Below are positions 8,103 through 53,531 of a DNA stretch of 64,000 nt, piece by piece. The DNA lies in the IMG/VR virus record IMGVR_UViG_3300042540_001399, positions 124,001 to 188,000 of that record, one strand, 5' to 3'. A program made the translations under genes and the position numbers. The notes beneath the pieces are model-generated. The model ran no database searches, had not been told where the DNA came from, and saw only the letters and a list, made by a program, of their open reading frames with translations. The first letter of the stretch is position 1, and each line of letters begins with the position of its first letter.

Positions 8103-8139
8103 TTTTTCTAATCCAATTTAATTTCCTATCTTTGTTTCT

Positions 8140-10443: not shown

Positions 10444-10466
10444 AAAAATATTATTATTTTTGTAAA

Positions 10467-11600: not shown

Positions 11601-11616
11601 TGGGGTCACCTTTTTT
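11586..11616 (+). terminator. Intrinsic terminator
   Basis: GGTGACTCCA/TGGGGTCACC-type stem plus T tract. Confidence 0.7.
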
Positions 11617-11672
11617 ACTTATAATTAAAAACAAACTATAATGGGAGAAGAAAACGACCAAAATAAAATAAA

Positions 11673-12638
11673 ATGGGAATTAAAAAAATTAAAAAAGAAA
11701 ATGATCAATTAAATTTAAATTTAATTGAAATGTTGGGGGCTTTTGATACAAGTAAAACAAAAAAATACACTCAATTCTTAATCAAAGTTTTGAACAAAAG
11801 AATAAAAGAGTATGAAAATTACCCTCAACTTGTAGAAAATGAAAATGTTATTGATAAAATTTTACCTTTGAATTCTTGGAAAAATTTACAGATTAGGAAT
11901 TATGTTTGTGATTTTTTATTTTCTTGGAATCAAATGAAAACTTTCATTGAATTTTGTGAATTAATGGAAAAAGGGTTAATTGAAGAAAATGACATCAGTA
12001 AATACGATTCATGGGAAATGTTAGAACATAATCTTTTTTATGCTAAAAATAAAGAAATGTTTAAAAAATCAAAAAAAGACATTAAGGTTATATTCGAAGA
12101 TGAAAAGTATCTGATTTTCAAACCAACAAGTTATTTGGCATCATGTTCCTATGGTTATCAAACTAAATGGTGTACCGCAATGGTGAATGATCCAGATTAT
12201 TTTTATCGTCACAGTCACAATGGTATTTTAATTTATTTGATTGATAAAAAAGAAAATAAAAAGTTTGCGTTTTATAAAAGAGTTTCTGATAATGATGTGG
12301 ATGATCATGAACAGTATATTTTTAAAACTTTCAATCAGCAAGATAAACAAATAGATACTATTCAAACAGGATTACCTGTTGAAATATTGAAAGTAATAAT
12401 GTTAGAAATGGACATTACGAACCCGACTAACTTACCAAATTATAAATTATTTTCTGAAGATGAAATTTCAAAAATGAAATATTACATCAACTTGAATGAA
12501 GAAGTTACTGAAAATGTAACACGACCACGTTTTAGAAATATATACCGAAGGTTAGAAGTTCTAAGAAACAATGAAGAGATTAATGAAGCTGAAATTGTTT
12601 CAGAATCTGAAGAAAATGTTGAAAACACATCAATTTAA
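11673..12638 (+). CDS. YGxxTKWC-motif protein, paralog 2
   Basis: FKPTSYLASCSYGYQTKWCTA...LIYLIDK. Confidence 0.65.
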   Translation: MGIKKIKKENDQLNLNLIEMLGAFDTSKTKKYTQFLIKVLNKRIKEYENYPQLVENENVIDKILPLNSWKNLQIRNYVCDFLFSWNQMKTFIEFCELMEKGLIEENDISKYDSWEMLEHNLFYAKNKEMFKKSKKDIKVIFEDEKYLIFKPTSYLASCSYGYQTKWCTAMVNDPDYFYRHSHNGILIYLIDKKENKKFAFYKRVSDNDVDDHEQYIFKTFNQQDKQIDTIQTGLPVEILKVIMLEMDITNPTNLPNYKLFSEDEISKMKYYINLNEEVTENVTRPRFRNIYRRLEVLRNNEEINEAEIVSESEENVENTSI

Positions 12639-29793: not shown

Positions 29794-30351
29794 CTAATCG
29801 TCCCATTGAGAAGTTACATCTAAATAATTTAAACCAAAATCAAGTTGTATTGTGTGAACGTAACCTTCAATCTCACCACGTAACCAATTTACAACATCCA
29901 AATAAATATCATCATAGTGATCATCCATAAGTTCTTCATAGGTTAATTGTCCATCACTTGTATCAAAAGTACCATTTATAATATAAAAACCAAAATTAAG
30001 TTCACCATCTTCCATGTAGAATTTTTCAAAACTACGGGTAATCATAACCTCGAAGTGGTCATTTGAATAAATATTTTGATCTGAGTTTCTTAGGTCTTTA
30101 TCTGTTACCTTTAAATTTGTAATGTATTGGTCAAAAAGTTCGAAAGCCTTATCCTTACCACCAACAAATTCATAATACCATTTATCAATTTGATCTATAT
30201 ATTTAGATAATTTTTTTCTATATAGATCAACGTAACCTATCCTTGGTATTTCACCTGAATTTACTTGGCGTTCCCATAGATTGAAAAAATACTTTTTTAA
30301 TGTATCCATTTTAGAATCTTCTCTTAATATGGTTTTGATAAGATCTTTCAT
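29794..30351 (-). CDS. Leader-bearing hypothetical protein, paralog of 37266
   Basis: MKDLIKTILRE; LKKYFFNLW matches LKRFFYNKW; minus-strand TATTTAT upstream. Confidence 0.65.
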   Translation of the reverse strand: MKDLIKTILREDSKMDTLKKYFFNLWERQVNSGEIPRIGYVDLYRKKLSKYIDQIDKWYYEFVGGKDKAFELFDQYITNLKVTDKDLRNSDQNIYSNDHFEVMITRSFEKFYMEDGELNFGFYIINGTFDTSDGQLTYEELMDDHYDDIYLDVVNWLRGEIEGYVHTIQLDFGLNYLDVTSQWDD

Positions 30352-31966: not shown

Positions 31967-32157
31967 AAATTATTATTACAGAAAAACAAGCAGATAAGTT
32001 GTTTGGAAATAATGTTGAATGTAAAAAATGTTCACACAGTTGGGAAATAGAAAAAAATGATAAAAACCCTTTTCTGTGTCATAATTGTGGGTGGGATCAA
32101 AAAATTAAAAAATATAAAGATAAAGAGTTGTTAAACTTTTGGAAAAAATATGAGTAG
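31963..32157 (+). CDS. Leader plus small zinc ribbon
   Basis: MKIIITEKQ; CKKC...CHNC. Confidence 0.65.
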   Translation: MKIIITEKQADKLFGNNVECKKCSHSWEIEKNDKNPFLCHNCGWDQKIKKYKDKELLNFWKKYE

Positions 32158-34648
32158 TTTAATTTCGGAAATAAACAGAATGCGAGATTTGATGGGTATT
32201 AAAACTCAAATCAATGAAAACTACTTCAAAAAAAATATTTTGCTTTTGGAAGAAACTGGATATGGTCAAGCCATGGATATTTACAAGGGCATGTTGAAAA
32301 AAGTTGGAATAGAACTTTCAGAGGAAGAACAGAAATATCTTAAAGCTTTTGTCGATGAATTTAACAGAAAATTCCCGTCAGAAAAAATTGATTTTTCTGG
32401 TGGACTAGATAATTTAACAAGAAAAACTTTAAATAATTTTCTGACTAAAGAAACAGAAGAAGTTGTTGGTGAAGTTTTTGAAAGAGCTATAAAAAATATT
32501 GAAGCCGATATTGCTATAAAACAAATTCAAACACCAACAGAAGTTTTAAGAACAAAACTAACAAATAATAATATTTTGAGTTCAGGTGGGGAAGCAAAAT
32601 CCTTGACGGATTACATTTCATTTATTTATCAAAAAGGGGGCGTAAAAAATTCAAACATTCCGCCCGATACATTAACTTTTTTGAAAATGGATTTAGAAGA
32701 AGCGGCAAAAAAATTAGTATCTACAGGAGAAGAAACTGTAAAAAAATATGTTAATGACTTAATAGGACAGATTGATGAATTAGAAGGAACTTCAGTAAAA
32801 ACTATAGATCCCGAAATAAAAAAATCAGTCACTGATTTAAAAACATCTTTAAAACCAGCGGTTGAAACCCAACTTTCGAAAGTAGATATTTCTAATAAAT
32901 TAAAAAGTTTGGCGGATGCAGACCAATCTATGAGATTAGGTAATGAAATGGATGTTGAAGTTGATTTGTCAAATCAAACAGATCTTAAAAACTTAATGGG
33001 TAACGATCCTGAAAGTTTTATTAAAAGTTTAGATTCTATGGAAGACCTTCAAAATGTTTGGATCATTGTTCAACATTCTGATAACGACATAAACTTTCAA
33101 AAACAAATTCTTAGTATACTACAAAAAAATCAACAATTTCTTGAAACTAAATTTACAACAGAAGCATCTCAGATAAAATCGGGAATTGCAATGTTAGAAG
33201 ATAGGGTTATGGTTAATTCGAACACAAGTGTGACAGGATATAGGGAAACTGGAATGGATGATTTTGGGGATTTAACCAAAGGTAAACAAACATATGGTTC
33301 ACAAGGTGGAATGACACCTGACGGTAGTTTTTGGGTCCCAAGACCAATAGAATTAGATGGAAAAATATATTTTTTCGAAACACCTCAAAAACTTTTAGAT
33401 GACACTGAATTTCTGAATAAACTAAACGCAAAAAGAACTTCTATGGGATTATCCAAAATGGAAGATTATTTGAAACTTATGAACGATGAACTTGGTGTGG
33501 TTGATGAATTAGTTGACGATTTGGTTCCTGCACAATATCTACCTAAAAATCTATCGGATAAAACAGTATTTTCGATTTTTTCAAAAAAGGGAATTTTTTA
33601 CTCAGAAGGTATCAATCTTACTAGAGAACTTATTGATAAATTTTTATCTGAATCACAAAAACTTTATGTGGATGCCATTACAAAAAAAGAATTACAGGAT
33701 TACATAACCGCATTAAATTATCTAAAAAATAAATTTGGTAACGGAAAAATATATGTTACTTCACTTTTAGATGGAAAAACAATAGAAAAAAAGACCATAG
33801 GTGAGTTTATTACCGATGTTGAAAATAATTTCAAAAGAATTTATGATGAACAGGGAAATTGGTCTCCTTTGAATAAGTTGGATACAAATTATAACGACAT
33901 GCCCAAAGAGATGACAACCTTTATCAAAACAGTTTTGAATCCTGAAGAATACGAAAATTTTGTAAAAAAAATACAAGATTTTGAAAATGCCCCTGCTAAT
34001 TCAATTGAAAAAGAACAGGCAAAAAAATTATTGGAAGACGAATTTAAAAATATTAAATCAAAACTTTTGACAAATGAAAACTATGTAAAAAATTGGACAA
34101 AAAGAGTTGACGAATTAACCCAATCAATTAAAAATAACAGCGCTTTAGGTAATTTATCAGAAACAAAGGTTAATGAAACTTTAAAAAATAATAATTTCAA
34201 AATTTTATTCACCGCTAGTGATGGATCACCAATTGACGTTTTACTCAATATAGATCAAATTGTAGAAGACACATCAGGAGTTTTTGGTGGTGGTATTAAA
34301 ACGGTTCAGACAAAAACAGCTAACTCAATCCAAGAAGGAAAATTTGTTGGTGTTGGTAAAGACAGAAAATTTGTACCTGAAGAAGGAACGGGCATATTTA
34401 AAGTTGAAATAACGGCAAATAAACGGATTGCGAAACAAAGTCAAATTGACCTTGCTGGGTTCTATGACCCTCAAACAGGTAAAACTTTAATTGTTGGTAA
34501 ACAACCAAAACTAAGTGGAACTTACAATCCGGACGGTACACCTCAGTATCTTTCACAGTTAGAACTACCTGGATCTACAATACCAGTTACAAAATCACCA
34601 ATTAAACCAATTATAATTGACAAAGATACGCCGAAGATCTTCCAATAA
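32150..34648 (+). CDS. Large leader-bearing multidomain protein (DUF6624-like middle, possible PD-(D/E)xK C-terminus)
   Basis: DADQSMR...WIIVQHSD...LEDR...QTYGSQ; GNLSE...IDQIV...VQTKT. Confidence 0.55.
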   Translation: MSSLISEINRMRDLMGIKTQINENYFKKNILLLEETGYGQAMDIYKGMLKKVGIELSEEEQKYLKAFVDEFNRKFPSEKIDFSGGLDNLTRKTLNNFLTKETEEVVGEVFERAIKNIEADIAIKQIQTPTEVLRTKLTNNNILSSGGEAKSLTDYISFIYQKGGVKNSNIPPDTLTFLKMDLEEAAKKLVSTGEETVKKYVNDLIGQIDELEGTSVKTIDPEIKKSVTDLKTSLKPAVETQLSKVDISNKLKSLADADQSMRLGNEMDVEVDLSNQTDLKNLMGNDPESFIKSLDSMEDLQNVWIIVQHSDNDINFQKQILSILQKNQQFLETKFTTEASQIKSGIAMLEDRVMVNSNTSVTGYRETGMDDFGDLTKGKQTYGSQGGMTPDGSFWVPRPIELDGKIYFFETPQKLLDDTEFLNKLNAKRTSMGLSKMEDYLKLMNDELGVVDELVDDLVPAQYLPKNLSDKTVFSIFSKKGIFYSEGINLTRELIDKFLSESQKLYVDAITKKELQDYITALNYLKNKFGNGKIYVTSLLDGKTIEKKTIGEFITDVENNFKRIYDEQGNWSPLNKLDTNYNDMPKEMTTFIKTVLNPEEYENFVKKIQDFENAPANSIEKEQAKKLLEDEFKNIKSKLLTNENYVKNWTKRVDELTQSIKNNSALGNLSETKVNETLKNNNFKILFTASDGSPIDVLLNIDQIVEDTSGVFGGGIKTVQTKTANSIQEGKFVGVGKDRKFVPEEGTGIFKVEITANKRIAKQSQIDLAGFYDPQTGKTLIVGKQPKLSGTYNPDGTPQYLSQLELPGSTIPVTKSPIKPIIIDKDTPKIFQ

Positions 34649-36891: not shown

Positions 36892-37266
36892 ATGAAAGTT
36901 CTGATAATGGAAAATCAACTAATATCTACAGTTCAAGGAATGGTAGATAATACAATTGACGAGTTCACAAAAGATTGTGAAAATATAGACGCTGAAAATG
37001 GGCCACCATATTTATCATTTGATGACTGTGATTTATTGGATAGTCTCGAAGAACTTGAAATTGTAGAAGTAACAAAAAGTGATCAAAATAAAGGTAAGTA
37101 CTTACTTTTCGACGCAAAGGTTAATGTTTATTATAGGAATGTTTTTGAATATCAGGACTATAGTAATTTTTTACATAGTTTAAGATTAAGAATAAAAGAA
37201 AAATATAAAATAACTGTGATGTTTACTGTTGCTGATGAAGTAAATAATCAACCAAGAGAATGGTAA
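36892..37266 (+). CDS. Leader-bearing hypothetical protein
   Basis: MKVLIMENQL; TATTTAT at 36879. Confidence 0.6.
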   Translation: MKVLIMENQLISTVQGMVDNTIDEFTKDCENIDAENGPPYLSFDDCDLLDSLEELEIVEVTKSDQNKGKYLLFDAKVNVYYRNVFEYQDYSNFLHSLRLRIKEKYKITVMFTVADEVNNQPREW

Positions 37267-37883
37267 TGAAAGGTATTATTAGACAAATATTGAATAACGA
37301 AATTAAGAATAATTTATATGAAGGAAAACCTTCAAATTATAAAAATATAGAACAACTTAAAAGATTTTTTTATAACAAATGGGATAAAGAAAAAAATGAA
37401 GGAAAAACACCATCAATTGGGGATATATCCAAATTAGGGTTGAATAGGGCTAAAGATCAAATAATTTCCTTATATGTTGAATATATGGGTTATGATTCTG
37501 AAATTAGTAAAATCACCGCTATTAAAAAATATTTGACATCGAATATTTTCACTGAAAAAGACATTACAGAAATGGATAATTTTAGTGAAGGTAAAATAAC
37601 TGTAAAATTTGATAAAGTTGATTTTTCCGAATATGAAAGTGATCGTGACAATGTTATGGATTTAGATGTTAGTTTTATAGTTCTTAATGGATCCTTCTAT
37701 AATAGTGAAGAAGACGAAATATATAACTTTTCAACTGGAAATAACCCATTTGATGACTTTGTTACATATTTTGAGTTTAAAGAAGAAATTGAACAGATTG
37801 TGGAAAGTTTTGTTCACAGAACAATAGAAAATTTTGGATTAGATATAAACCGTAATTTTGATTATATAAGTGTTAAGTGGTAA
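37266..37883 (+). CDS. Leader-bearing hypothetical protein
   Basis: MKGIIRQILNNE; paralog of 29794. Confidence 0.65.
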   Translation: MKGIIRQILNNEIKNNLYEGKPSNYKNIEQLKRFFYNKWDKEKNEGKTPSIGDISKLGLNRAKDQIISLYVEYMGYDSEISKITAIKKYLTSNIFTEKDITEMDNFSEGKITVKFDKVDFSEYESDRDNVMDLDVSFIVLNGSFYNSEEDEIYNFSTGNNPFDDFVTYFEFKEEIEQIVESFVHRTIENFGLDINRNFDYISVKW

Positions 37884-38383
37884 TGAAAAAAATCATAAGA
37901 AATATACTACATGAAGAAAATAAAAATAGTCGTTTATTATCTGATATGATAGAAAATGAAGGTCTTCTTATGACATGTAAAAAAGTTGGTGGTATAGAAA
38001 GGTTATCAAAAATTTTAGGTGTAAGAGATTATAAAATAGTTGAAAATTATTTTGTTGGAAGACAAATATCAACAAATAATTTTGAATTTCCATTAGAAGT
38101 TGGGGGATATGATTTTGTTTTTGAAGTAACCCATGTTAATTATGACTTAACTGACGATTTTATGGAAATAAGATTCAAAATAGTAGAAGGGGAAGTCACA
38201 CTTATAATGACAACGGATGAAACTTATGATCTTTTAGGTGATGATCTAAAAGAAAATGAATATTTGGTTTGGGAAATAAGATATGAAGTTAGGGAGGTTG
38301 TACGTGAATATTTCAAACTATATTTTGAATATATTAGATATAGATTATTTAGCGGTTTAGATGTTGAAGTAACAAATATGTAA
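37883..38383 (+). CDS. Leader-bearing protein with KxVGG module
   Basis: MKKIIRNILHEE; KKVGGIERLSKIL. Confidence 0.6.
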   Translation: MKKIIRNILHEENKNSRLLSDMIENEGLLMTCKKVGGIERLSKILGVRDYKIVENYFVGRQISTNNFEFPLEVGGYDFVFEVTHVNYDLTDDFMEIRFKIVEGEVTLIMTTDETYDLLGDDLKENEYLVWEIRYEVREVVREYFKLYFEYIRYRLFSGLDVEVTNM

Positions 38384-38388
38384 AATAA

Positions 38389-38415
38389 GTTTACAGTAAA
38401 CTGTTTACTGTAAAC
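38389..38415. repeat. Perfect nested palindrome
   Basis: GTTTACAGTAAAC-T-GTTTACTGTAAAC. Confidence 0.85.
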
Positions 38416-38430
38416 AAAAAAAATAGAAAT

Positions 38431-39426
38431 ATGAAAAATATTATAAGAGATATATTAAAAGAAGAAACTTTTTTAATAAGCGAGATAGATATAAAACCAT
38501 CTCAAGTCGCTTTGGACAATGTATGTAAATCAAAAAAGTTTTGTAATGCTCAAGGTAAAATTACATTTGGGCAATTAAGGGAACTTGTAGAAAAAGGTAG
38601 ACTCAAAAGAATAGGAACACACATTGGAGAAGGTGGTTATAAAGCGACACTTAGGTTGATACCTTGGTTTATACCACAATTAGCACTTTTAGGTTTTGGA
38701 GCAACATGGGTTAGGGTTGCAAACAAAATATTCAGACCAGCTTTAGAAGAAACTACAGGATATAAAACATGGTGGGGAAAAACCATAATGAAAATATTTG
38801 ACATGGTAGAAGGTGAATTAAAGGCCGAAGACCCTTTGTCAAAAATATTTTTCATTTCTGATGGTTTGATGACAATGTTGGATGAAAAATATAAAGTTAA
38901 ATTTGCAAATTACATTTCTCAAGTGGCTGATGAAAAACCCAACGATGAAATAGTACCTGATTATTTTGTGGAAAATGAATTAAGAAATTGGTTAAATCAA
39001 AAGTTTCTTTTGGATCCGCCATTACAACCTAAACAAATTACAACATACGTGGATAATGATACAAAATCAGAAGTTGAATTAAAAGAAAACAAAGATTCGA
39101 ATTATGATAAAAAAAATATGGCATCGAAAGTTCTTGATGAATTGAATTTATCACCATGGAAAAATGATACCTATGGTATGGAATATTTATCAACACCAGG
39201 AAAAACAATTATTTTTTTGAATATCAAACCCGATAAGGAAGTTGTAATATTGGATACAATTTATAAAGTCCTGAACAGGATCTTCAAAGAAGAACAGGCA
39301 CTTGAAAACTTTATTTTCGAGTATATCGAATATTTTGGATTGAATGTAAGAATAGGAAGTTTTTTAACTATTTCACAAGACGTTGGTACGTTAGAAGAAG
39401 ATGATGAACCATTAGACTTTGATTAA
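38431..39426 (+). CDS. Leader-bearing two-module protein
   Basis: MKNIIRDILKEE; internal ELKE before a second module. Confidence 0.6.
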   Translation: MKNIIRDILKEETFLISEIDIKPSQVALDNVCKSKKFCNAQGKITFGQLRELVEKGRLKRIGTHIGEGGYKATLRLIPWFIPQLALLGFGATWVRVANKIFRPALEETTGYKTWWGKTIMKIFDMVEGELKAEDPLSKIFFISDGLMTMLDEKYKVKFANYISQVADEKPNDEIVPDYFVENELRNWLNQKFLLDPPLQPKQITTYVDNDTKSEVELKENKDSNYDKKNMASKVLDELNLSPWKNDTYGMEYLSTPGKTIIFLNIKPDKEVVILDTIYKVLNRIFKEEQALENFIFEYIEYFGLNVRIGSFLTISQDVGTLEEDDEPLDFD

Positions 39427-40717: not shown

Positions 40718-41143
40718 ATGAAAAGAATAGTTAGATTAACAGAATCAGATTTGGCTCGTATCGTTAGACGAGTTATCAGGGAAGAAGCTGAAGGTCAAGG
40801 AACAGAAAACAGAGAACAATATTACGAAATGATGAGAAATGGTAAATGTCCTAACGTTGTTTTGTCATACAAAAAAGATGGTGATTGGTTTGATAATCAT
40901 ACAAGTACATCTTTGTTTGACATGGCTTCTCGTGTAAATGGTTTGGACTTAAGTCAAAAACAAGGAAATGGTACCCTTGGTGAGTATCTTCTTATGATGG
41001 TAAGAAAAGGGAAACATGGTTTGAAATGTGGTAGTAACGGATATTACTTTTTGAAACCTGAAGAACAAGAAGTGGCTTCTGATGAGTATGGTATCACTAA
41101 GAAACTAGAAAGAAAATTCCAAGGACAAGGTGGACCAAGATAA
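40718..41143 (+). CDS. Leader-bearing hypothetical protein
   Basis: MKRIVRLTESDLARIVRRVIREE. Confidence 0.65.
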   Translation: MKRIVRLTESDLARIVRRVIREEAEGQGTENREQYYEMMRNGKCPNVVLSYKKDGDWFDNHTSTSLFDMASRVNGLDLSQKQGNGTLGEYLLMMVRKGKHGLKCGSNGYYFLKPEEQEVASDEYGITKKLERKFQGQGGPR

Positions 41144-42233: not shown

Positions 42234-42281
42234 AAAATGGTTTACTATCTATTGTTAGATATAAACAATAAAATTAAAAAA

Positions 42282-43847
42282 ATGAAACAAATTTATCTAA
42301 CAATTTTTTCTGTAATGATGACAGTTTTGTCTTATTCACAGAATTCTTTTTGGACACCTACAACATACAGAGGTGCTTTTCCTATAACAGATAACACACC
42401 ACAAACAGATTGGACTCATGGTTGGTCTAATTGGGATCCACAAAATACACAGTACCCAACAACTCAATTGGTAATTAATACTGATGTAACTACTGATGCA
42501 ACTTGGTCAGGTGTTATAAAATTACAAAACAAAGTTTATATTAAAAATGGTGCAACACTTACAATACTTCCAGGAACTATAATTAGAGGTGATTACAATA
42601 GTCAAGGAACTCTAATTGTAACAAGAGGATCAAAAATTATTGCTGATGGAAATGTGAACCAACCAATCGTCTTTACCTCAAACAATCCTGTCGGAAGTAG
42701 AAACGAAGGAGATTGGGGAGGTTTAGTTCTTTTGGGGCATGCCATTAATAATCAACCTGGTGGTGTTGTTAACATAGAAGGATTACCACCATCTACAAAC
42801 ACTCAACATGGAGGAGGTAATGATAATGATAACTCAGGAGTGTTAAGATATGTAAGAATCGAATTTGCAGGAATTCCACTTGAACCAAACAAAGAAATTA
42901 ACGGATTAACATTCGGTTCAGTTGGAAGTTTAACTACAGTGGATTATGTACAAGTAAGTTTCTGTGGAGACGACTCGTTTGAGTGGTTCGGAGGAACGGT
43001 AAACTGTAAACATTTAATTTCATATTCAACAATAGATGACGATTTTGATACTGACTTTGGATACAGAGGTAAGGTTCAATTCGGTTTGGCGATTAGAAAT
43101 GAAAATTTGTCAGACGCAGCGGGCGACTCAAATTGTTTCGAATCGGATAATGACGCACAGGGTAGCGCTTCTCAACCATTGACGGCACCTATTTTTTCTA
43201 ACTTCACGATTATTGGGGCTAAGGGTGATGGGACTGTAATTCTTCCAGTGGGTGAAAAATTTGAAAAAGCTTTCAGATTAAGAAGAAATACTGCAACTTC
43301 TGTTTTCAACTCAATTGCGACAGGATGGGAAAAAGGATTATCTTTAGAGGGTGTTCCTGTTGAAAATAACATAACTTCAGGTGTTATGAACTTTAATAGT
43401 AACATACTTTCAAACTTTAATACTGGGACAGTTTGTTATACAACAACACCAAACTTTCTTTCATCTTATTTTTCTCAAAACTTGAATGACTCAACTTTAA
43501 CGAATCAAGACATCAATTGGGTTAACCCATTTGTTCAAATAGGATCAACACCTGATTTTAGATTGAATGGGTTCTCGTTTGCGGCAATTGGTGCCAACTT
43601 CCCTTTAAACATATTTGGAAATATTGCGTCAGTCGATGAACTTAATAATGGGTACACAATTTATCCTAACCCGGCAACCAATCAAATTACGGTTAATGAA
43701 AAAACTAATATCGAAGTTATGGATCAAAACGGGAAATTATTAGTAAGTTCTTTTGATAATCAAGTTGAATTGATAAATCTACCAAATGGAGTTTATTTTG
43801 TTAGACTAAACAACTCCAAGGTTGAAAAGTTAATAATTAGAAAATGA
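42282..43847 (+). CDS. Secreted beta-helix-like protein with T9SS (Por) C-terminal sorting domain
   Basis: Signal peptide; GDWGGLVLLG, DNSGVLRYVRIEFAG and DDSFEWFGG; C-terminal IYPNPA...GVYFVRL...KLIIRK. Confidence 0.85.
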   Translation: MKQIYLTIFSVMMTVLSYSQNSFWTPTTYRGAFPITDNTPQTDWTHGWSNWDPQNTQYPTTQLVINTDVTTDATWSGVIKLQNKVYIKNGATLTILPGTIIRGDYNSQGTLIVTRGSKIIADGNVNQPIVFTSNNPVGSRNEGDWGGLVLLGHAINNQPGGVVNIEGLPPSTNTQHGGGNDNDNSGVLRYVRIEFAGIPLEPNKEINGLTFGSVGSLTTVDYVQVSFCGDDSFEWFGGTVNCKHLISYSTIDDDFDTDFGYRGKVQFGLAIRNENLSDAAGDSNCFESDNDAQGSASQPLTAPIFSNFTIIGAKGDGTVILPVGEKFEKAFRLRRNTATSVFNSIATGWEKGLSLEGVPVENNITSGVMNFNSNILSNFNTGTVCYTTTPNFLSSYFSQNLNDSTLTNQDINWVNPFVQIGSTPDFRLNGFSFAAIGANFPLNIFGNIASVDELNNGYTIYPNPATNQITVNEKTNIEVMDQNGKLLVSSFDNQVELINLPNGVYFVRLNNSKVEKLIIRK

Positions 43848-44056: not shown

Positions 44057-44599
44057 ATGACAAAACTTGTAATTGACCCGTCCCACTCTGATTTGGGTTT
44101 TAAAATCAGACACTTAATGGTATCTAATGTAAAAGGTACATTAACTAATTACTCAGGAGGTATGACATATACCGCTGAAGATATGAGTGACGCTCAAGTA
44201 AGATTTGATGCCGAAGTAAACTCTATTTCTACAGGAAATGCTGACCGTGACGCACACTTAAACGCTGAAGACTTCTTCAACACAGAAAGATTCCCAAGAA
44301 TGTATTTTGAATCTACAATGGTAAATGTTGAAAACGGAAAGATGAAAGGTGAAATGACAATCAAAGATACAACAAAAGAAATCGAGTTGGATATTGAGTA
44401 TAACGGTAAGAGTGTTGATCCATGGGGTAATACGAAACATGGGTTTGAAATTACAGGAGTAATCAATCGTTCTGATTTTAATCTTACATGGAACGCACCT
44501 TTAGAAACAGGTGGTGTATTGTTGAGTGATGAAGTTAGATTAACACTTGATGTTCAGATGATGGAAATGGTTGAACAAACTGAAGAGCAACCCGCATAA
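44057..44599 (+). CDS. yceI: YceI family lipid/polyisoprenoid-binding protein
   Basis: IDPSHS..GFKIRHLMVSNVKG, RDAHL and DPWG...INRSDF. Confidence 0.92.
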   Translation: MTKLVIDPSHSDLGFKIRHLMVSNVKGTLTNYSGGMTYTAEDMSDAQVRFDAEVNSISTGNADRDAHLNAEDFFNTERFPRMYFESTMVNVENGKMKGEMTIKDTTKEIELDIEYNGKSVDPWGNTKHGFEITGVINRSDFNLTWNAPLETGGVLLSDEVRLTLDVQMMEMVEQTEEQPA

Positions 44600-44693
44600 T
44601 ATAGTTTTAGAATAACACTAAAATATAGAAATCCCCACCAAAAAAGTGGGGATTTTTCTTTTTTATATCATTTACATTTACTATATTTTGTAT

Positions 44694-45011
44694 ATGTTAA
44701 GACACCAAAACCCAATTCAGATCAATTCTACAACAACAGGATTTGCTTCACCAGCGGAAACATACGTTGACAAACGATTAGATCTAAATGACTTGATTGT
44801 GAAAGATCACTACACAACATTTTATTTTAGATATTCAGGACCATCAGTCTTTGGAATCAATCAAGGTGATACAATAGTAATTGATCGAACTGAGAATCCA
44901 AAAGATGGGGATTTGGTAATCTTAACTGATAAGAATCATTTCAAACTTCGAGAGTTCAAAGGACAAAAAAACTTATGGGGAAAAGTAACATGGGTATTAA
45001 AGAAAATGTAA
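44694..45011 (+). CDS. umuD: UmuD-like (S24) protein, short and degenerate
   Basis: GFASPA...LDLNDL...SGPS...GDTIVIDR; directly upstream of umuC; start moved to 44694. Confidence 0.8.
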   Translation: MLRHQNPIQINSTTTGFASPAETYVDKRLDLNDLIVKDHYTTFYFRYSGPSVFGINQGDTIVIDRTENPKDGDLVILTDKNHFKLREFKGQKNLWGKVTWVLKKM

Positions 45012-46207
45012 AAAAGATTGGAATAATTGATTGTAACAACTTCTATGTTAGTTGTGAAAGATTATTTAATCCTGAATCTATTGGAAGACCAACCGTTGTA
45101 TTATCAAACAATGACGGATGTGTAATTGCCAGATCACAAGAAGCAAAAGACCTTGGAATTAAAATGGGGGAACCATTCTTTAAGAGTCGAGAGTTCATGG
45201 ACCAACATAGATTTTGTGTATACTCATCAAACTACAACCTGTATGGTGATATGTCAGATAGGGTTATGAAAGTAATCTCGGAGTTTGGAAATGATATTGA
45301 GGTATATTCAATTGATGAAGCGTTTGTTGATTTTTCAAACATACCTTTAGAAGATCTCACAGAAACATTAATAGCAATTAAAGAAGAAGTTAGAAAGAAA
45401 GTTGGAATTCCTGTATCAATTGGTGTTGGCCCAAACAAAACTTTAGCTAAACTAACATCCTTTTTAGCTAAACAACAGCTAAACTATAATGGTGTATGTT
45501 CATATTGGGACTTACCAAACTTTAGAAATATGTCTTATGGGATTAATGTTGATGAGGTTTGGGGTATTGGTAGAAAGTGGGCAAAAAAACTAAAAAACAT
45601 TGGGGTAGAATCAGTAGGTCAGTTTATTAACACAAACGAATATACTGTTAGAAAGTTGATGAATATCAATGGAGTAAAAACTCAATTGGAGTTAAAAGAA
45701 ATGTATTGTTTTTTAATTCAAAAGAAGTCCAAACCAAAAAAAAATATTGCATCTACTCGTTCTTTTGGAAAAGATGTACAGGACTTTGATCAACTGGGTG
45801 AAGCGATGTATACATACATTAAAAACGGTGTGAAGAAATTAAGTCAAAACAAGTTGTTTGCAAATAAAGTAACTATATTTGTTTCAGGAAATTATCATAA
45901 AGGTGATAAGTATTACCATTCTAAAACAATCAAACTTCAAAATCCAACTAGAGATCCTGACCTTATTTGGTCACAGATTCACGAACAATATAAAGTTCTT
46001 TGTGACAAATCTGAAAAGTATAAAAAGTGTGGAATAGTATTTAATGAACTTACTCCTGATACAATTATCCAAACTTCTTTATTTAGTGACGATGTTAAAG
46101 TTGTAAACGCCCCACAGAATGAAAACCATGAGTGGGAAATGAAACAAGACTATATTACTCAAAAGTACACAACATCATGGAATGAGTTACCACTTGTTTT
46201 TGTTTGA
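44990..46207 (+). CDS. umuC: Y-family DNA polymerase V catalytic subunit
   Basis: DCNNFYVSCER, SNNDGC, YSIDEAF and STRSFG; C-terminal YTTSWNEL. Confidence 0.93.
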   Translation: MGIKENVKKIGIIDCNNFYVSCERLFNPESIGRPTVVLSNNDGCVIARSQEAKDLGIKMGEPFFKSREFMDQHRFCVYSSNYNLYGDMSDRVMKVISEFGNDIEVYSIDEAFVDFSNIPLEDLTETLIAIKEEVRKKVGIPVSIGVGPNKTLAKLTSFLAKQQLNYNGVCSYWDLPNFRNMSYGINVDEVWGIGRKWAKKLKNIGVESVGQFINTNEYTVRKLMNINGVKTQLELKEMYCFLIQKKSKPKKNIASTRSFGKDVQDFDQLGEAMYTYIKNGVKKLSQNKLFANKVTIFVSGNYHKGDKYYHSKTIKLQNPTRDPDLIWSQIHEQYKVLCDKSEKYKKCGIVFNELTPDTIIQTSLFSDDVKVVNAPQNENHEWEMKQDYITQKYTTSWNELPLVFV

Positions 46208-46224: not shown

Positions 46225-47166
46225 ATGAAAAATTTAATTAGATCAATACTAAATGAAGAATTACACCGTGAAGTTATACATGAATGTACTATAGCTGCGG
46301 TAAGACTCGAAGATGGTGTTGTTTTGGCGAAAAATAGAGATCGTGGATATAAAGCAAGAGTTGAAATCATTCATGAAATAGTCAATGATGTTGAAATGGT
46401 TTATTGGAGAGATGTTGACACTGATTGGAGTGAAGGAATGAATGAATTTGGTATCGGGATTGTAAATTCAAGTTTATTAGTCGTTCAAGACGAAAAGGAA
46501 GGTAAAGGGGTTGAAAAAGAAAGAAAATCTGATGGAAAAGATAAGGACAAACCAGCAAAAAAAAGATTCGCGGCTGACGGTGGTAAAATTAGAAAGGCTC
46601 TAACTTATAAAACTTTACCTAAAGTTATCAAATCAATTATTTCTTTCAGAGGTGAAGATAAAAAAGATGTTGGCCTCAAAGGGGAAACAATAGTGTCCAA
46701 TAATGAAAATGTTTACGTAGTTGAAATGACCGCAAAACATTCCCCTGTGATCAAAAAATTGAAAAAAGAATCAAAATTAGTTGTCAGAACTAATCACGGC
46801 ATTTATCAGAAAAGTGCTGGTTATACCAGTGGTAAAAAAAGAAAATCTTCAGTTTCAAGGATGAAATTGGCTCAGGATCATCTCAAAGATGTAAAAAATG
46901 ATATGGATGTTATTGATGCTATGAAAAAGAAATACAAAAAAGATCCATTTTTGAATCCATACAGAACAAAAAATATGTATCACATGCAAACAACGGGACA
47001 AATTATGATGAATCTTGATAAAAAACTTGTTGTTGTAAGAATGGATAATGAAATGGGTGAATTTGTTGGAATAGAAAACAAACTTCCTAAAGATTATGAA
47101 CCCAAAATCAAAATCAAAGTCGAAAGTGAAAAAACACATGATAACGGTAAAAAACTACCAACTTAA
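46225..47166 (+). CDS. Leader-bearing Ntn (N-terminal Cys nucleophile) hydrolase
   Basis: CTIAA...LAKNRD, EGMNEFGI and RTNH motifs; Cys21 follows I-H-E; TATTTAT at 46213. Confidence 0.75.
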   Translation: MKNLIRSILNEELHREVIHECTIAAVRLEDGVVLAKNRDRGYKARVEIIHEIVNDVEMVYWRDVDTDWSEGMNEFGIGIVNSSLLVVQDEKEGKGVEKERKSDGKDKDKPAKKRFAADGGKIRKALTYKTLPKVIKSIISFRGEDKKDVGLKGETIVSNNENVYVVEMTAKHSPVIKKLKKESKLVVRTNHGIYQKSAGYTSGKKRKSSVSRMKLAQDHLKDVKNDMDVIDAMKKKYKKDPFLNPYRTKNMYHMQTTGQIMMNLDKKLVVVRMDNEMGEFVGIENKLPKDYEPKIKIKVESEKTHDNGKKLPT

Positions 47167-48305: not shown

Positions 48306-48716
48306 ATGAACCTACAAGAAAACATACAAAGAATCAAAGAAATGATGAAAATAAATCATTCATTTTTGAACGAATCGCAAAGTTTAGGAGTTACCAAAAT
48401 TTTGGGTAGACCATTCCAATTAGTTAAAACTGAAGTACCTTACAAATTTGAAATCCAAGATAACAAAAATGACATGATTAAAATGCAAATAACCGCACCT
48501 AATGGTTCTTTTATTAATATAGATGAAGTTGACCATGTTTTGGAAGAAACTGACGGTGGTGGAAAAAAATTGATTGGTTATAATTTCAAGGGTAAGAGCG
48601 GAACTGTAAAGTTGATAGATGTTCCAAATGTTAAAAGAATTATTGAGTTTGTTGATAATTCAGAAAAAAAATCAATAACAATTTCTTTTGTGACATTCGA
48701 AAAAGTACTTGAATAA
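48306..48716 (+). CDS. MNLQE-leader hypothetical protein
   Basis: Leader repeat followed by an unrelated body. Confidence 0.7.
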   Translation: MNLQENIQRIKEMMKINHSFLNESQSLGVTKILGRPFQLVKTEVPYKFEIQDNKNDMIKMQITAPNGSFINIDEVDHVLEETDGGGKKLIGYNFKGKSGTVKLIDVPNVKRIIEFVDNSEKKSITISFVTFEKVLE

Positions 48717-49198
48717 TGAACCTACAAGAAAACATACAAAGGATAAAAGAAATGATGGGAATAATAGTTGAAAATTACTATGACCCAAAAAAGTTGTATG
48801 TTGACATGGGTGGAGTTTTATTCAAAAAAATGGGTGCCGATGAAGGTGGATCAGGTAATGAAACTGATTATATAGGGAGCGAATTATGGGAAAGTATTAA
48901 AAAATATTACCCAATAATTCTTACTTCCACAGGATCCAAAAATATAGAAAATTCAGAAAAAATAAAAACCAAACAAGTTCAAGACTATTTAAACCCAATT
49001 CCAAAAATTGAATTTGTTGTCTTTGGGGCTGATAAAAAAACTTTTGCCACCACAACTCAAGACGATTTAGTTTATCCAAATATTTTAATAGATGATTCTG
49101 AAACAAACATAAACGGATGGGTAAACAATGGAGGTATTGGAATACTTCATAAAAATAATCAAACAACTTTGGAACAATTAAAAAGTTATATCAAATGA
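48716..49198 (+). CDS. MNLQE-leader HAD/5'(3')-deoxyribonucleotidase-like protein
   Basis: LYVDMGGV, ILTS, KK and ILIDD...GGIGILH. Confidence 0.7.
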   Translation: MNLQENIQRIKEMMGIIVENYYDPKKLYVDMGGVLFKKMGADEGGSGNETDYIGSELWESIKKYYPIILTSTGSKNIENSEKIKTKQVQDYLNPIPKIEFVVFGADKKTFATTTQDDLVYPNILIDDSETNINGWVNNGGIGILHKNNQTTLEQLKSYIK

Positions 49199-49950
49199 AC
49201 CTACAAGAAAACATACCGGTACATATAAAAAGAAGAATTCATTTAATTGATAAGGTAATAGATAATTTGTTACCCAATATGTATCCGTGTGATTATAATT
49301 CTTATGACCATTTTGTGGAAGGAGTATTAGATGAAATTAGATGGTTTTTAATTGATGTAGAAGAATTACAACGTATTGAAAGATCGGATATTGAAAACTA
49401 CATTCTTGATTACAAATATGATGAATTAACTGAATACTTCAATGAAAGGTGTATTGTTTTAAAAAATGATAAACTACAAGAAAACATAAGAAGACTTTCA
49501 AGAGAAAATTCACTAAAGAATGATTTGATGAATCTAATTGATAATGTTGGTTTAAAAAAAGCGTCAAAGGCTGTGGGAGGGATGGTTAGATTATTAAAAA
49601 TATTAGATCTTGATCAACAAGAAATTAATAATTTTATTTACCAGTATCTAAAAGAAGAGTTTTATCCTGATTATAATTGGGGACCTGAAATACATGATTT
49701 TTATAAAAAAGAAATTGAACAGTATGGTATATATGATTTTTTGATTAATGATGATCCGGCATATTCATATTTAGGTGAGTGGGATGGATATGAATATCTA
49801 TACACACTATCAATTGGTAAACTTGTCAGGGATGAACTTACAAAACTGTTTGGGGATAAGTGGATTCCAATTTTTAAGAAATGGTTTGAAGAAAACTCAG
49901 GTCTTGAAGTAAGAGAAATAGACTTAAATAATAAATTTTTAGTGTATTGA
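49195..49950 (+). CDS. MNLQE-leader two-module protein (RR/YPC module and KAVGG module)
   Basis: Internal second leader KLQENIRRLSRE. Confidence 0.7.
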   Translation: MNLQENIPVHIKRRIHLIDKVIDNLLPNMYPCDYNSYDHFVEGVLDEIRWFLIDVEELQRIERSDIENYILDYKYDELTEYFNERCIVLKNDKLQENIRRLSRENSLKNDLMNLIDNVGLKKASKAVGGMVRLLKILDLDQQEINNFIYQYLKEEFYPDYNWGPEIHDFYKKEIEQYGIYDFLINDDPAYSYLGEWDGYEYLYTLSIGKLVRDELTKLFGDKWIPIFKKWFEENSGLEVREIDLNNKFLVY

Positions 49951-50297
49951 TTGAGGTGAACAAAAAAGAATTTATAAAAAGACTATTAAGGGAAAATAAT
50001 TCAAATCCAATTAATCCAATTTTAAGAAGATTGGATGTCGTTGATTGGTTGGTTGAGTTTTCAGTAAGAGAAATAGAAAGACAATATAATGGTATATGTA
50101 AAGTAAGAACCCCTGAAAACTTTTTGGAAATTGTAATAGAAAAGACTGGGGATGGAATGTATTGGGATTATTTTTCTGACACACTAGATGATGATTCAGA
50201 AGAGTGGGCGGAAATGTATAGATTCATATCCATATATGTGTATAATAAATTTGGTGATAAGTTAAGAGAACATTTTCACACACAGTGTGGAGATTAA
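49947..50297 (+). CDS. LRR-motif helical module protein
   Basis: NPILRRLD...C...C; exact start uncertain. Confidence 0.6.
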   Translation: MIEVNKKEFIKRLLRENNSNPINPILRRLDVVDWLVEFSVREIERQYNGICKVRTPENFLEIVIEKTGDGMYWDYFSDTLDDDSEEWAEMYRFISIYVYNKFGDKLREHFHTQCGD

Positions 50298-50311
50298 CAT
50301 AATTATATAAT

Positions 50312-51094
50312 ATGAACCTACAGGAAAACATATTAAGAATTAAACAAATGATGGGACTTGTTACAGAAGTTACTAATCCATACAAAGTTGAATGGTTGGA
50401 ACCTACACAAGAATACTTTACACAAGAGTTAAGTGAGTTATTGGGCAATCCTATTAGGTTTACAGACAAAGAGTTTTTCAACCCTGAAAACTATGATACG
50501 GTTTATAACATTATGCCACACACATTCAAAACGATTGCTGAATTTTCTAAAGGTGAATATGTGGAAGGCGAAGATAAAATTAAGGACATACTTCTAAATC
50601 AAAATATAATATCTCTTTTAAAAGAAGAAGAAAGATGGAATGAATTGAAAAACATTTTAATGAATGACCCGCAATCAATCCAAGAAGGTTATGATTTCTT
50701 CAGTCGTGGTCAAATGACGATATGGAAAGGAACTAACCCTGAAACAGGTGAACATATTGATAATGTAAACAACACTGATTACATGGGTGAATTAACAAGT
50801 TTTCTTGAACCATTAAAAAAAACCGTATCTTCCAAAATGTCATCACATTTGAAAAAAGTTGGTGACGGAGAAGGTAATAAAGATTTACACGCTTTTGCAG
50901 GAAACATCGACCAATATAGAGAATTTGCAAAGAAAAGTGAAACAAGAAAATTACCAGCACCATTTGTTGTTAAATACTACACAAAGAAAAATGATAAAGA
51001 TTATGTTTTAATAGGTGGATTCAAAAGAAGTTCAATCGCATTACAAATGGGTATTGAACCAATAAAAGTTTGGTTAATAGATTTAACAATATGA
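50312..51094 (+). CDS. MNLQE-leader protein with C-terminal ParB/Srx-like motif
   Basis: LPAPFV...LIGGFKRSSIA. Confidence 0.55.
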   Translation: MNLQENILRIKQMMGLVTEVTNPYKVEWLEPTQEYFTQELSELLGNPIRFTDKEFFNPENYDTVYNIMPHTFKTIAEFSKGEYVEGEDKIKDILLNQNIISLLKEEERWNELKNILMNDPQSIQEGYDFFSRGQMTIWKGTNPETGEHIDNVNNTDYMGELTSFLEPLKKTVSSKMSSHLKKVGDGEGNKDLHAFAGNIDQYREFAKKSETRKLPAPFVVKYYTKKNDKDYVLIGGFKRSSIALQMGIEPIKVWLIDLTI

Positions 51095-51840
51095 ACCTAC
51101 AAGAAAACATACAAAGGATTAAACAAATGATGGGGATCATTAACGAGAATATAGATGATGTTCTTGACAAAATGAGCCGAGGTGAAGAATTGTCACAGGA
51201 AGATAAAAATAAAATGTCAGTATTTCAAAAACATCTTTTTTCAGGAAAAAAAGAAAATGATTTCAAATATCACAGAGTATCTGAGTTAAATATTGCAGAA
51301 CCTAATTCAGAAAATCATGTAAATGAATCACAAATTCTTGTACACTACGATTCTAATACTAATATCAAACCAGAATACATGGTAAAAAAAATTGCACTTA
51401 TTTTAAATAAATCAAACATTGATTGTGTAGTTGGGTATTCTTTTAGATTGTTTACATTTGCCAATGGGTATTTTGTTAAGGTAAATGAGTACCAAGTCGA
51501 AAACGCAATTTATGTTTTGAATAAAAACGGGTTTAGTACGGAAATGAATCCAATGTATGATCTTTCAAATAACTATGACACAAAAAGTAACCGAGAAGAA
51601 AAACTACAAAACTTTTCTGAAAATTCAGATATAATAATTTTGAGTGACTCTGAAATTTATCAAAATTTAAATCTTACTGATACACAATTTAATGATAGAT
51701 TAGAAAAACTGTTAAAAAAATTTGGTATAAATAACTTCTTTATAACAAAAAATAAAATAACCATTTCTGATAAATCAAAAATTGACGATGTGATTAATTA
51801 TTTGAATACCAAAGGATACAACACAAGAAGATCAAGATAA
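51091..51840 (+). CDS. MNLQE-leader hypothetical protein
   Basis: True start at 51091 (ATGA overlap with previous stop). Confidence 0.7.
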   Translation: MNLQENIQRIKQMMGIINENIDDVLDKMSRGEELSQEDKNKMSVFQKHLFSGKKENDFKYHRVSELNIAEPNSENHVNESQILVHYDSNTNIKPEYMVKKIALILNKSNIDCVVGYSFRLFTFANGYFVKVNEYQVENAIYVLNKNGFSTEMNPMYDLSNNYDTKSNREEKLQNFSENSDIIILSDSEIYQNLNLTDTQFNDRLEKLLKKFGINNFFITKNKITISDKSKIDDVINYLNTKGYNTRRSR

Positions 51841-51841
51841 T

Positions 51842-52249
51842 ATGAATTTACAAGAAAACATATCAAGGATTAAACAAATGATGGGACTTCTTACAGAAGG
51901 ACTTCATGACACATATTGGCAAAATGAAGATGGTGACAAAATAACTCTAATTGATTTATTAAATGCAACACAAGACATACCTGTAGAAGAATTTTCCGTA
52001 GAAGAATTAAAACCGCATCTATTAACTTGGGATGGGGATGAAGATGAGGTTAAAAAAATAGAAAGTGCCAATTTACAATACCCAATATTAATATTCGTAA
52101 ATGACGATGGTGAATTTATATCAATTATAGATGGTCATCACCGAGCACAAAAAGCGGTGAGAAAAGGGTTAGAAACAATTAAGGCGAAGGTAATACCAAT
52201 TAATTCTTTACCTAAAAACATAAGAAGAGTATTTTCACATATGAACTAA
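51842..52249 (+). CDS. MNLQE-leader ParB/Sulfiredoxin-like protein
   Basis: ANLQYPILI...IIDGHHRAQKA. Confidence 0.8.
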   Translation: MNLQENISRIKQMMGLLTEGLHDTYWQNEDGDKITLIDLLNATQDIPVEEFSVEELKPHLLTWDGDEDEVKKIESANLQYPILIFVNDDGEFISIIDGHHRAQKAVRKGLETIKAKVIPINSLPKNIRRVFSHMN

Positions 52250-52250
52250 T

Positions 52251-53531
52251 ATGAACCTACAAGAATCCATAAGAAGAATATTAAGGGAAGATTTGTTAAA
52301 TAAATCAAAATTCTTTCTAAGAAGAATTAATTTAGATGAGGTTAAAAAATTACTTCCAATCAACGCAGAACAAGTACATGGTGAAACAAAAAGTTATGAG
52401 CAATTCAAGTATGAATTAACTTTAAGAGCCGTGGAGGCAATTATGTGGAATGATTATGAACTCGGGTGGGAAGATCTACCAGAACAAGAGGAAATAGAAT
52501 TTGTTAATGAAGTTTCCAACATGTTTAATAAAACAATCAAAAAGTTATATAATTCTTATAGTGGAAGAATATTAAGGGAAGAAGATTATTCTCCGGCGGG
52601 TAAAGAAATAATACCAAATAAAATTGTGATCCACAAGTCCAATCCGATCTTCAGAAATAAGATAATGGAAAATGGTCTTAAAGTAAGGGCAGGAGAATGT
52701 TACAAAATATATGTTGGTTATGGTGTTAAGTGTAAACCTGCAATTTTTGCAACCAACTCAACGAACAAAAGAGCATGGTTTGATTCAACATACGACGATG
52801 ATATATGGGAAATAAATACAGAAATGATTCCTGATGTAAAGTGGTATAAAGATAGACACTTTGAGTCAAGGTCAAAACATATTGTTACGTTTCAAGACAT
52901 ACCAAAAGAAGCAATAACTTTAAAATATGAAGGAAGTGGAAGTGGAGATGTAGAAAAGTGGGATAAAGATTCGCCAAACATAGTTAGAGAATCCCAAATA
53001 GACCCTTATCTTCTAAGAAGATTTCATGAGTTCGACGACACTTTCAAATTGGTATCATCAAATGTTTATCCATGTGATTTCAGACATCCACAACATTATT
53101 GGAATTACACGATAGAAAGAGTACTGGAAGCTATTTATTTTAATTTTTTCTATGAAACTAAATCCGAATTAAATTGGGAGTCCCTTTCTGATGAAATTCT
53201 TTATCTTCTAAATAGAACATATTATGATGAATTAGTTTCAGACTGGGAATCCAAGTGTAATAATAATATTCATGAAGATTTTTCACCTGAGTTTTTAAGA
53301 AGAATAACTATAATTGATACGTTAATTGACGCAACCCTTTCTTCTATGTACCCATGTGAATATAGTTCTGAAAAAGCTTTTCTTCGTGGTTTATACGACG
53401 AATTATATTGGTCATTTATAGGGGAAGACTTAAAAATTATTGACTATTCAGATATTATTGATTTTATAGAAGAAAACAGAAAAGAAGACATATATGATTA
53501 TTGGGACGAATATTGTGTTCGATTATCATAA
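52251..53531 (+). CDS. Four-module protein: LRR module, ADP-ribosyltransferase-like domain, two more LRR modules
   Basis: VIHKS...IMENGL...IFAT...DIPKEAI; modules separated by ILREE, VRE and IHE. Confidence 0.6.
   Translation: MNLQESIRRILREDLLNKSKFFLRRINLDEVKKLLPINAEQVHGETKSYEQFKYELTLRAVEAIMWNDYELGWEDLPEQEEIEFVNEVSNMFNKTIKKLYNSYSGRILREEDYSPAGKEIIPNKIVIHKSNPIFRNKIMENGLKVRAGECYKIYVGYGVKCKPAIFATNSTNKRAWFDSTYDDDIWEINTEMIPDVKWYKDRHFESRSKHIVTFQDIPKEAITLKYEGSGSGDVEKWDKDSPNIVRESQIDPYLLRRFHEFDDTFKLVSSNVYPCDFRHPQHYWNYTIERVLEAIYFNFFYETKSELNWESLSDEILYLLNRTYYDELVSDWESKCNNNIHEDFSPEFLRRITIIDTLIDATLSSMYPCEYSSEKAFLRGLYDELYWSFIGEDLKIIDYSDIIDFIEENRKEDIYDYWDEYCVRLS

Follow-up and report, generated by a model that had tools for sequence, protein, structure and literature searches.

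A predicted Ntn hydrolase of a giant phage whose putative catalytic cysteine directly follows a predicted cut site of the head-maturation protease

A giant phage encodes a predicted amide-cleaving Ntn hydrolase whose putative catalytic cysteine sits directly behind a sequence matching the cut site of the phage's own T4 gp21-type (S77) head-maturation protease, and the best reading of our results is that the enzyme is kept off until the capsid matures and is then carried into the next host (probability about 0.55). The gene lies in a 64,000-nucleotide stretch of DNA (the window) corresponding to positions 124001-188000 of a single 290,887-bp virus record with 31% G+C (IMG/VR IMGVR_UViG_3300042540_001399). 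The record is a jumbo phage, and a T9SS-type C-terminal domain ORF in the window, together with the fact that the only cultured relatives are Chryseobacterium phages, points to a Bacteroidota host. A first-pass annotation, made from the sequence alone, had described a Cys-Ntn hydrolase here with its Cys codon at 46285 immediately after I-H-E, and that observation is confirmed: the ORF starts with ATG, and the KNRD, EGMNEFG and RTNH motifs named in that annotation are all present. The features of the gene are as follows.

46225-47166 (+): ORF of 313 aa plus stop, predicted precursor of a Cys-Ntn hydrolase (AAT/C45-like, choloylglycine-hydrolase-like fold)
46225-46284 (+): 20-codon leader or propeptide (M1-E20), with residues 2-13 predicted helical and residues 10-20 of low model confidence
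46249-46257 (+): L9-N10-E11, a first candidate L/I-x-E site, closing an 11-residue segment that we infer to be capsid-targeting-like by comparison with the 10-residue targeting sequence of T4 IPIII (PMC9026906)
46276-46284 (+): I18-H19-E20 (ATA CAT GAA), predicted P3-P2-P1 of the activating cut
46285-46287 (+): Cys21 codon (TGT), predicted N-terminal nucleophile of the mature enzyme, at the first residue of the first core strand
46330-46344 (+): K36-N37-R38-D39-R40 (KNRD at residues 36-39), an invariant motif 15-19 residues after the Cys
46432-46452 (+): E70-G71-M72-N73-E74-F75-G76, with E70, G71 and N73 invariant (N73 is a candidate oxyanion-hole Asn)
46525-46584 (+): Lys-rich insert (about residues 101-120) between helices, of low model confidence (pLDDT 55 and 70 for its two blocks)
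46786-46797 (+): R188-T189-N190-H191, with N190 invariant across the whole family
46963-46965 (+): R247, an invariant Arg 226 residues after the Cys

The assignment to the Ntn hydrolases rests on a structural model, as sequence comparison alone gave little. The protein scores 22.5 bits (E 1e-4) against Pfam PF03417 (AAT, peptidase C45), below the gathering threshold of 23.2 bits, and although some homologues do carry PF03417 and one of them (P0230) scores 25.0 bits, we regard the protein as a distant relative of that family and not a member. A profile of 54 homologues found nothing relevant among PDB sequences, and PHROGs has no family for this ORF. An AlphaFold2 model built on 52 homologues is confident overall (pLDDT 85.4, pTM 0.86) and shows a four-layer alpha-beta-beta-alpha sandwich, with a helix at residues 2-13, a low-confidence linker, and the first core strand (residues 21-28) starting exactly at Cys21. 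The top Foldseek matches are all Ntn hydrolases (probability 1.00), namely isopenicillin-N acyltransferase (AAT; E 3e-9), CV2077, bile-salt hydrolases (BSH), penicillin V acylase (PVA), NAAA, acid ceramidase and proteasome subunits. VIA-align gave Z 20.7 to CV2077 (PDB 3gvz) and 19.0-19.4 to AAT (19.4 to 2x1c), with Z 16-21 across AAT, BSH and PVA, and its alignments to mature chains begin at model residue 21 opposite residue 103 of AAT, residue 2 of BSH and residue 1 of PVA. The KNRD, EGMNEFG and RTNH motifs are invariant or nearly so in 52-54 homologues, and C, K-N-R-D-R, E-G-x-N, N-H-G and a distal Arg stay invariant across 37 sequences at 33-51% identity. R38/D39, N73, N190 and R247 are candidates for the partners of the nucleophile in BSH and AAT, although this equivalence rests on spacing (Arg/Asp about 17-18 residues after the Cys, and a distal Arg at the Cys2-Arg228 distance of BSH) and on background knowledge of those enzymes rather than on a residue-level structural alignment.

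The junction between leader and nucleophile is far from chance. A search of a large protein database returned 1,022 clusters at E <= 1e-3, and of the best 120, the 117 with an intact N-terminus all have Glu at -1 and I, L, V or M at -3, while P2 takes more than a dozen different residues; by comparison, 49% of the ORFs of this genome have any [ILVM]xE within residues 4-30. The leaders upstream vary freely and fall into several unrelated and interchangeable types (MKNLIRSILNE-like, MNLQESIRKIL-like, MxNINEEINRIQNIMGI-like and MKIIITESQL-like), which are the same types that head many other ORFs in the window. Most long-leader homologues, like the protein studied here, carry two L/I-x-E sites. 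Among 160 IMG/VR loci, 138 have [ILVM]-x-E before the Cys, including a large clade whose entire propeptide is four or five residues (M-I-N-E, M-L-N-E or M-K-L-T-E) and proteins in which 90-360 residues precede the site. In the cultured carriers, Chryseobacterium phages MA9V-1 and MA9V-2 (proteins WIC41446.1 and WNN12488.1), the junction is F-L-N-E before the Cys. Asp was never seen at -1 in any of the junction censuses.

At the level of the whole family, however, the -1 residue is not invariant. An exhaustive search with the mature domain gave 455 hits, and the 150 representatives listed show three discrete states: [ILVM]-x-E before the Cys in 46, [K/R]-x-[A/G/S] before the Cys (hereafter K-x-A) in about 55, and Met directly before the Cys in about 20, with P3 and P1 coupled without exception. 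A tree of 139 domains places the Glu state deep and paraphyletic, whereas the K-x-A state forms a single derived clade (SH-aLRT 97) and Met-Cys arose at least three times, twice within a Glu background and once within K-x-A. We considered that the Met-Cys forms might be gene-calling artefacts, but this was rejected for the one locus checked at the DNA level (L165), where stop codons lie just upstream of the start. The enzyme therefore needs neither the leader nor the Glu, and what is conserved is that something must expose the Cys. Many K-x-A proteins are polyvalent-type proteins of 700-2800 residues that combine the domain, often as the first, with RNA ligase, topoisomerase IB, nucleotidyltransferase, HAD, 2H phosphoesterase, superoxide dismutase and zeta-toxin-like domains, and they carry a recurring R-V-A-[S/A]-R-[Y/W/H] element at several domain borders, one copy of which sits 7-14 residues before the Cys.

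The genome encodes a protease with the appropriate predicted specificity. The gene, at 257574-258290 of the virus record, matches PF03420 (at 257724-258149; 80.7 bits, E 1.4e-23) and phrog_207 (E 2e-43) and lies within a T4-like head module that reads terminase, T4-like portal, head-maturation protease, a 585-aa acidic scaffold-like ORF and a gp23-like major capsid protein. In T4, gp21 cuts after Glu in L/I-X-E; in the 10-residue targeting sequence of IPIII, residues 8 and 10 govern processing and Asp at position 10 blocks it, and propeptides range from 7 residues, in the packaged enzyme Alt, to 65 (PMC9026906). Core-like ORFs beside the protease are rich in [ILVM]xE (6.25, 8.3 and 4.6 per 100 residues, against a genome mean of 2.2), and the capsid protein has F-L-I-N-E followed by A at residue 60, much as in the gp23 cut of T4. 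An S77 match was found in 14 of 16 records with the Glu junction, comprising this genome, 5 of 5 short-propeptide contigs, 4 of 5 long-leader contigs and 4 of 5 further records that include both complete cultured Chryseobacterium phages, and the two misses are only 71% and 33% complete. In contrast, none of five K-x-A contigs had an S77 match, nor was an S78 (HK97-type) or ClpP protease found in them, although these contigs are only 27-79% complete and, as K-x-A is a single clade, the link between junction class and protease amounts to essentially one independent evolutionary contrast.

If the junction served Ntn autoproteolysis, it should be private to this family, and it is not. Two further ORFs of the window with leaders, unrelated to the Ntn family, were used as comparators.

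1032-2414 (+): DHH-like ORF (some homologues carry PF01368) with a short leader ending L-V-E directly before the conserved S-G-I-R
48716-49198 (+): ORF that we read as HAD-like from its sequence, with an MNLQENIQRIKEMMG-type leader ending I-V-E

In the DHH-like family, all 69 distinct N-termini among 120 homologues have [I/L]-x-E immediately before S-G-I-R, with leaders of 4 to 24 residues of the same interchangeable types. In the HAD-like family, all 47 distinct N-termini have [ILVM]xE 4-12 residues upstream of the domain anchor, and only one has [ILVM]xD. The distance to the domain floats in the HAD-like family but is fixed at zero in the Ntn family, the only one in which the site is locked to one position, as would be expected if the site is a cleavage site in all three families and only the Ntn hydrolase needs the cut at one exact bond. 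These two deep family searches replaced a test of conserved [ILVM]xE columns near N-termini in 20 small families from flanking DNA, which was underpowered and poorly controlled (0.0075 against 0.0050 per column). In the genome as a whole, N-terminal 24-mers resemble each other far more than internal ones do (103 against 16 pairs at score >= 35). By our regular expressions, leaders of these types head at least 32 of the 308 called ORFs, and in these 32, [ILVM]xE outnumbers [ILVM]xD 60:13 within the first 30 residues, against 120:145 in the rest of the same proteins, although this comparison is partly circular, as the expressions themselves contain Glu at some positions, and is only supportive.

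Taken together, the reading we favor is that the gene encodes an inactive precursor whose leader, a short amphipathic helix followed by L/I-x-E sites, resembles a T4 capsid-targeting propeptide. In this view, the precursor would be built into the prohead, the S77 protease would cleave between Glu20 and Cys21 and so free the alpha-amino group that a Cys-Ntn hydrolase needs for catalysis, and the mature enzyme would travel in the capsid and enter the next host with the DNA, where it would hydrolyze an as yet unidentified amide substrate. The analysis itself establishes the Ntn fold (from the model), the position of the nucleophile, the invariant junction among close homologues, the presence of the protease and the occurrence of the same junction in unrelated leader-bearing proteins, whereas which protease makes the cut, the start of the mature chain at Cys21 in vivo, enzymatic activity, packaging in the head, ejection into the host and the substrate are inferred. 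The paper on the cultured carrier Chryseobacterium phage MA9V-1 (WIC41446.1) offers only an SDS-PAGE gel as regards packaging. The proposal of the first-pass annotation that the leader is a zymogen propeptide and that head maturation switches the enzyme on is thus supported in part. Of the conditions set there, the fold is Ntn and Glu is invariant at -1 among phage homologues that share the T4-type protease, but not across the family, and cleavage by the head protease rather than by the enzyme itself is inferred from co-occurrence. Its further claim that this is the sharpest evidence for Glu-specific processing of the leaders also holds, as only here must the cut fall at one exact bond.

Autoproteolysis of the Glu20-Cys21 bond is the main rival and, although less likely, it is not excluded. 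AAT, the closest solved relative, as well as NAAA, acid ceramidase and PVA, remove their propeptides autocatalytically; the leader here likewise directly abuts the nucleophile, and in the match to the AAT precursor 2x1c_B, model residues 14-20 were aligned with the precursor segment 96-102 leading into Cys103. The conserved aliphatic P3 and Glu P1 could then serve the intramolecular reaction by docking the propeptide in the substrate groove or by acting as a general base, with the head protease playing no part or only trimming the leader upstream. The persistence of the motif in propeptides of 4-5 residues, which cannot be targeting signals and whose packaging would need another route, and the clade specificity of the junction classes, as expected for a trait co-evolving with the enzyme, are consistent with this. 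In addition, the scissile bond leads straight into a core strand, and a folded precursor may not offer it to an outside protease, a point on which the model is no guide, as pLDDT is about 55 for residues 11-20. However, the same kind of junction is invariant in the DHH-like and HAD-like families, which have no Ntn fold or nucleophile, the motif equals the known specificity of the protease family these phages encode, known autoprocessing relatives have Gly or a hydrophobic residue rather than Glu at -1, and the absence of Asp, the most conservative replacement for Glu, from -1 in the junction censuses matches the block by Asp in T4.

Other readings are less likely still. In a two-step hybrid, the prohead protease would remove the targeting helix at L9-N10-E11 inside the head and the remaining nine residues would be shed autocatalytically, so that head maturation licenses activation without completing it. 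The two sites in this leader and in most long-leader homologues would fit, and the steric objection is avoided, but the invariance of P3 and P1 at the second site, and the retention of only that site in short-leader forms, are not explained. It is more doubtful that the Ntn domain is itself the leader or polyprotein peptidase, cutting after Glu in [I/L]-x-E, or after [A/G/S] in the K-x-A clade, both at its own N-terminus and in other leader-tagged or polyvalent proteins. The residues before the Cys do change together with the general linker motif of the lineage, no S77, S78 or ClpP protease was found in the K-x-A contigs, and the domain often comes first in giant multi-enzyme proteins, but this genome has a protease of a family with exactly this specificity, which is the simpler explanation, the closest folds are small-molecule amidases and acyltransferases, and phages with the Met-Cys form would still need leader processing. 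Least likely is a binding protein or pseudo-enzyme that keeps its leader for an unrelated role, for which we found no direct evidence; the invariance of the full putative catalytic set across clades at 33-51% identity, including forms that start Met-Cys, argues for a working Ntn active site that needs a free N-terminal Cys.

Comparison with known systems indicates that what is new is the combination of the propeptide logic of T4 cargo with the N-terminal-nucleophile logic of Ntn hydrolases. AAT (IAT, MEROPS C45; PDB 2x1c/2x1d/2x1e) and CV2077 share the four-layer fold, the position of the Cys and, in AAT, a propeptide abutting it, but at only 12-16% sequence identity, and AAT cuts itself at the Gly102-Cys103 bond after a 102-residue alpha chain that stays bound, whereas the leader here is 20 residues, interchangeable and ends in Glu. 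The family is also virus-restricted as far as tested, as a search of 185,579 prokaryote species genomes with the K-x-A alignment found a single relative, on a MAG contig. BSH and PVA (choloylglycine hydrolase family, C59) match in fold and have similar motif spacing, and some phage homologues start Met-Cys as BSH does, but there is no detectable sequence match, and in those enzymes the nucleophile is exposed by Met removal or by autocleavage of a 3-residue propeptide rather than at a Glu-specific site. The T4 internal proteins and Alt have short N-terminal propeptides ending in L/I-x-E, and Alt is a precedent for a packaged, ejected enzyme with a 7-residue propeptide, but in T4 the cut releases the cargo from the core and is not known to create a catalytic residue, whereas here the new N-terminus would itself be the nucleophile. 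The giant phages phiKZ and SPN3US load many proteins into the head and cut them after Glu in a short motif by means of diverged gp21 homologues (PMC9026906). The P3 preference there is for Ser, Ala or Gly, and no Ntn hydrolase cargo was found in the papers searched. The protein in the window is a single domain and thus not itself a polyvalent protein in the sense of Iyer et al. 2017 (PMC5512222), in which a term search found no mention of an Ntn domain, although its distant homologues sit in such proteins. Our literature searches found no description of a phage-packaged Ntn hydrolase, of trans-activation of an Ntn hydrolase by a viral maturation protease, or of these leader families. As to the substrate, language-model neighbors include CBAH/AAT-like 'conjugal transfer' proteins of Bacillota (scores 0.90-0.91), which would fit a role at cell entry but is only a weak lead.

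A broader possibility, which we put forward tentatively, is that the creation of a catalytic N-terminus by the maturation protease, as an on-switch for a packaged enzyme, is one visible case of a much larger system. The leader-bearing ORFs make up about a tenth of those called in this genome, which would mean that a large and varied enzyme cargo is loaded, trimmed and injected, and in a sister lineage of megaphages the same logic seems to use a different leader and cut motif (R-V-A-S-R-Y ... [K/R]-x-[A/G/S]) inside giant polyvalent proteins.

The enzyme family is widespread, with over 1,000 clusters, and is a biochemical lead in its own right, while the interchangeable leaders could be used to load foreign proteins into capsids, as the T4 targeting sequence has been. 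For phage biology, the junction gives a precise, testable read-out of the specificity of the prohead protease of an uncultured phage, and it also offers a way to predict capsid cargo from sequence alone in jumbo phages, where most genes have no annotation. Ntn hydrolases are textbook self-activating enzymes, and a family whose nucleophile is unmasked by a different, virus-encoded protease would be a new activation route. It would also show a phage timing the activity of an enzyme to capsid maturation, which protects the producing cell and arms the virion.

Runs of adjacent, otherwise unrelated ORFs in the window begin with the same few leader types, namely MNLQENIQRIKEMMG..., MKxIIRxILxEE..., MKRIVRLTESDLxRIV... 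and MKIIITESQ.... These ORFs are found in the following parts of the window:

48306-53531, ORFs at 48306, 48716, 49195, 50312, 51088, 51842 and 52251
29794-30351 (-)
37260-39426
40718-41143
32150-34648

Based on our regular expressions, at least 32 ORFs in the genome carry such a leader, and N-terminal 24-mers match each other far more often than internal ones do (103 against 16 pairs). The DHH-like leader-bearing protein encoded at window 1032-2414 occurs in some phages fused to a C-terminal SET domain (PF00856) or a GNAT acetyltransferase, as seen among its homologues P0310, P0315, P0330, P0331, P0337, P0340 and P0341, and this hints at a modular cargo of host-modifying enzymes.

A recurring element of a different type was found in the sister clade with the [K/R]-x-[A/G/S]|Cys junction, where giant multi-enzyme proteins, including P0213, P0216, P0245, P0253, P0261, P0266 and others, as well as loci L085-L092, carry R-V-A-[S/A]-R-[Y/W/H], often after H-A-D-P-A, at several domain borders. 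This element looks like a repeated targeting or processing signal of megaphage polyproteins. Searches of five such contigs detected no S77, S78 or ClpP protease.

In the genome that contains the window, the ORFs flanking the S77 protease, at 8091-8813, 10297-10515 and 10639-12396 of locus L004 (positions 256091-260396 of the virus record, G000:C1), are unusually dense in [ILVM]xE, with 6.25, 8.3 and 4.6 per 100 residues, respectively, against a genome mean of 2.2. The 585-aa ORF among these also has long acidic repeats, and these ORFs are candidates for multiply-cleaved core or scaffold proteins. A very high [ILVM]xE density was also observed outside the window at G000:C1:20-7471, where the longest ORFs called here translate as M-E-L-Q/M-V-Q-type repeats, but this is probably the wrong frame or strand of a repetitive, possibly collagen-like, gene, and these ORF calls should not be trusted. 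In the cultured Chryseobacterium phages, the S77 protease match (29-30 bits) lies at the start of a 1,213-1,349-codon open frame annotated as 'prohead core protein serine protease' (locus L001, record OR050627.1 126501-130544, MA9V-1 ORF151; and OR513085.1 near 167084-167422), and the protease therefore seems to be fused to a long core or scaffold protein in these phages.

The region upstream of the gene for the predicted Ntn hydrolase contains several other ORFs, with the UmuD-like, UmuC-like and YceI-like assignments below being putative readings of the translations only:

44646-46207, an ORF pair read as UmuD-like (S24 peptidase) and UmuC-like (Y-family polymerase), ending 17 bases before the Ntn gene
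44057-44599, an ORF read as YceI-like
42237-43847, a 536-aa ORF with an N-terminal signal-like segment and a C-terminus that looks like a type IX secretion sorting domain

The last of these supports a Bacteroidota host, and such a protein is an unusual thing for a phage to encode. For the Ntn protein itself (window 46225-47163), the protein-language-model neighbors beyond the viral clusters are CBAH/AAT-like 'conjugal transfer' proteins of Bacillota (scores 0.90-0.91). These matches are no more than a lead at this point. Ntn amidases may be a shared tool of invading elements.
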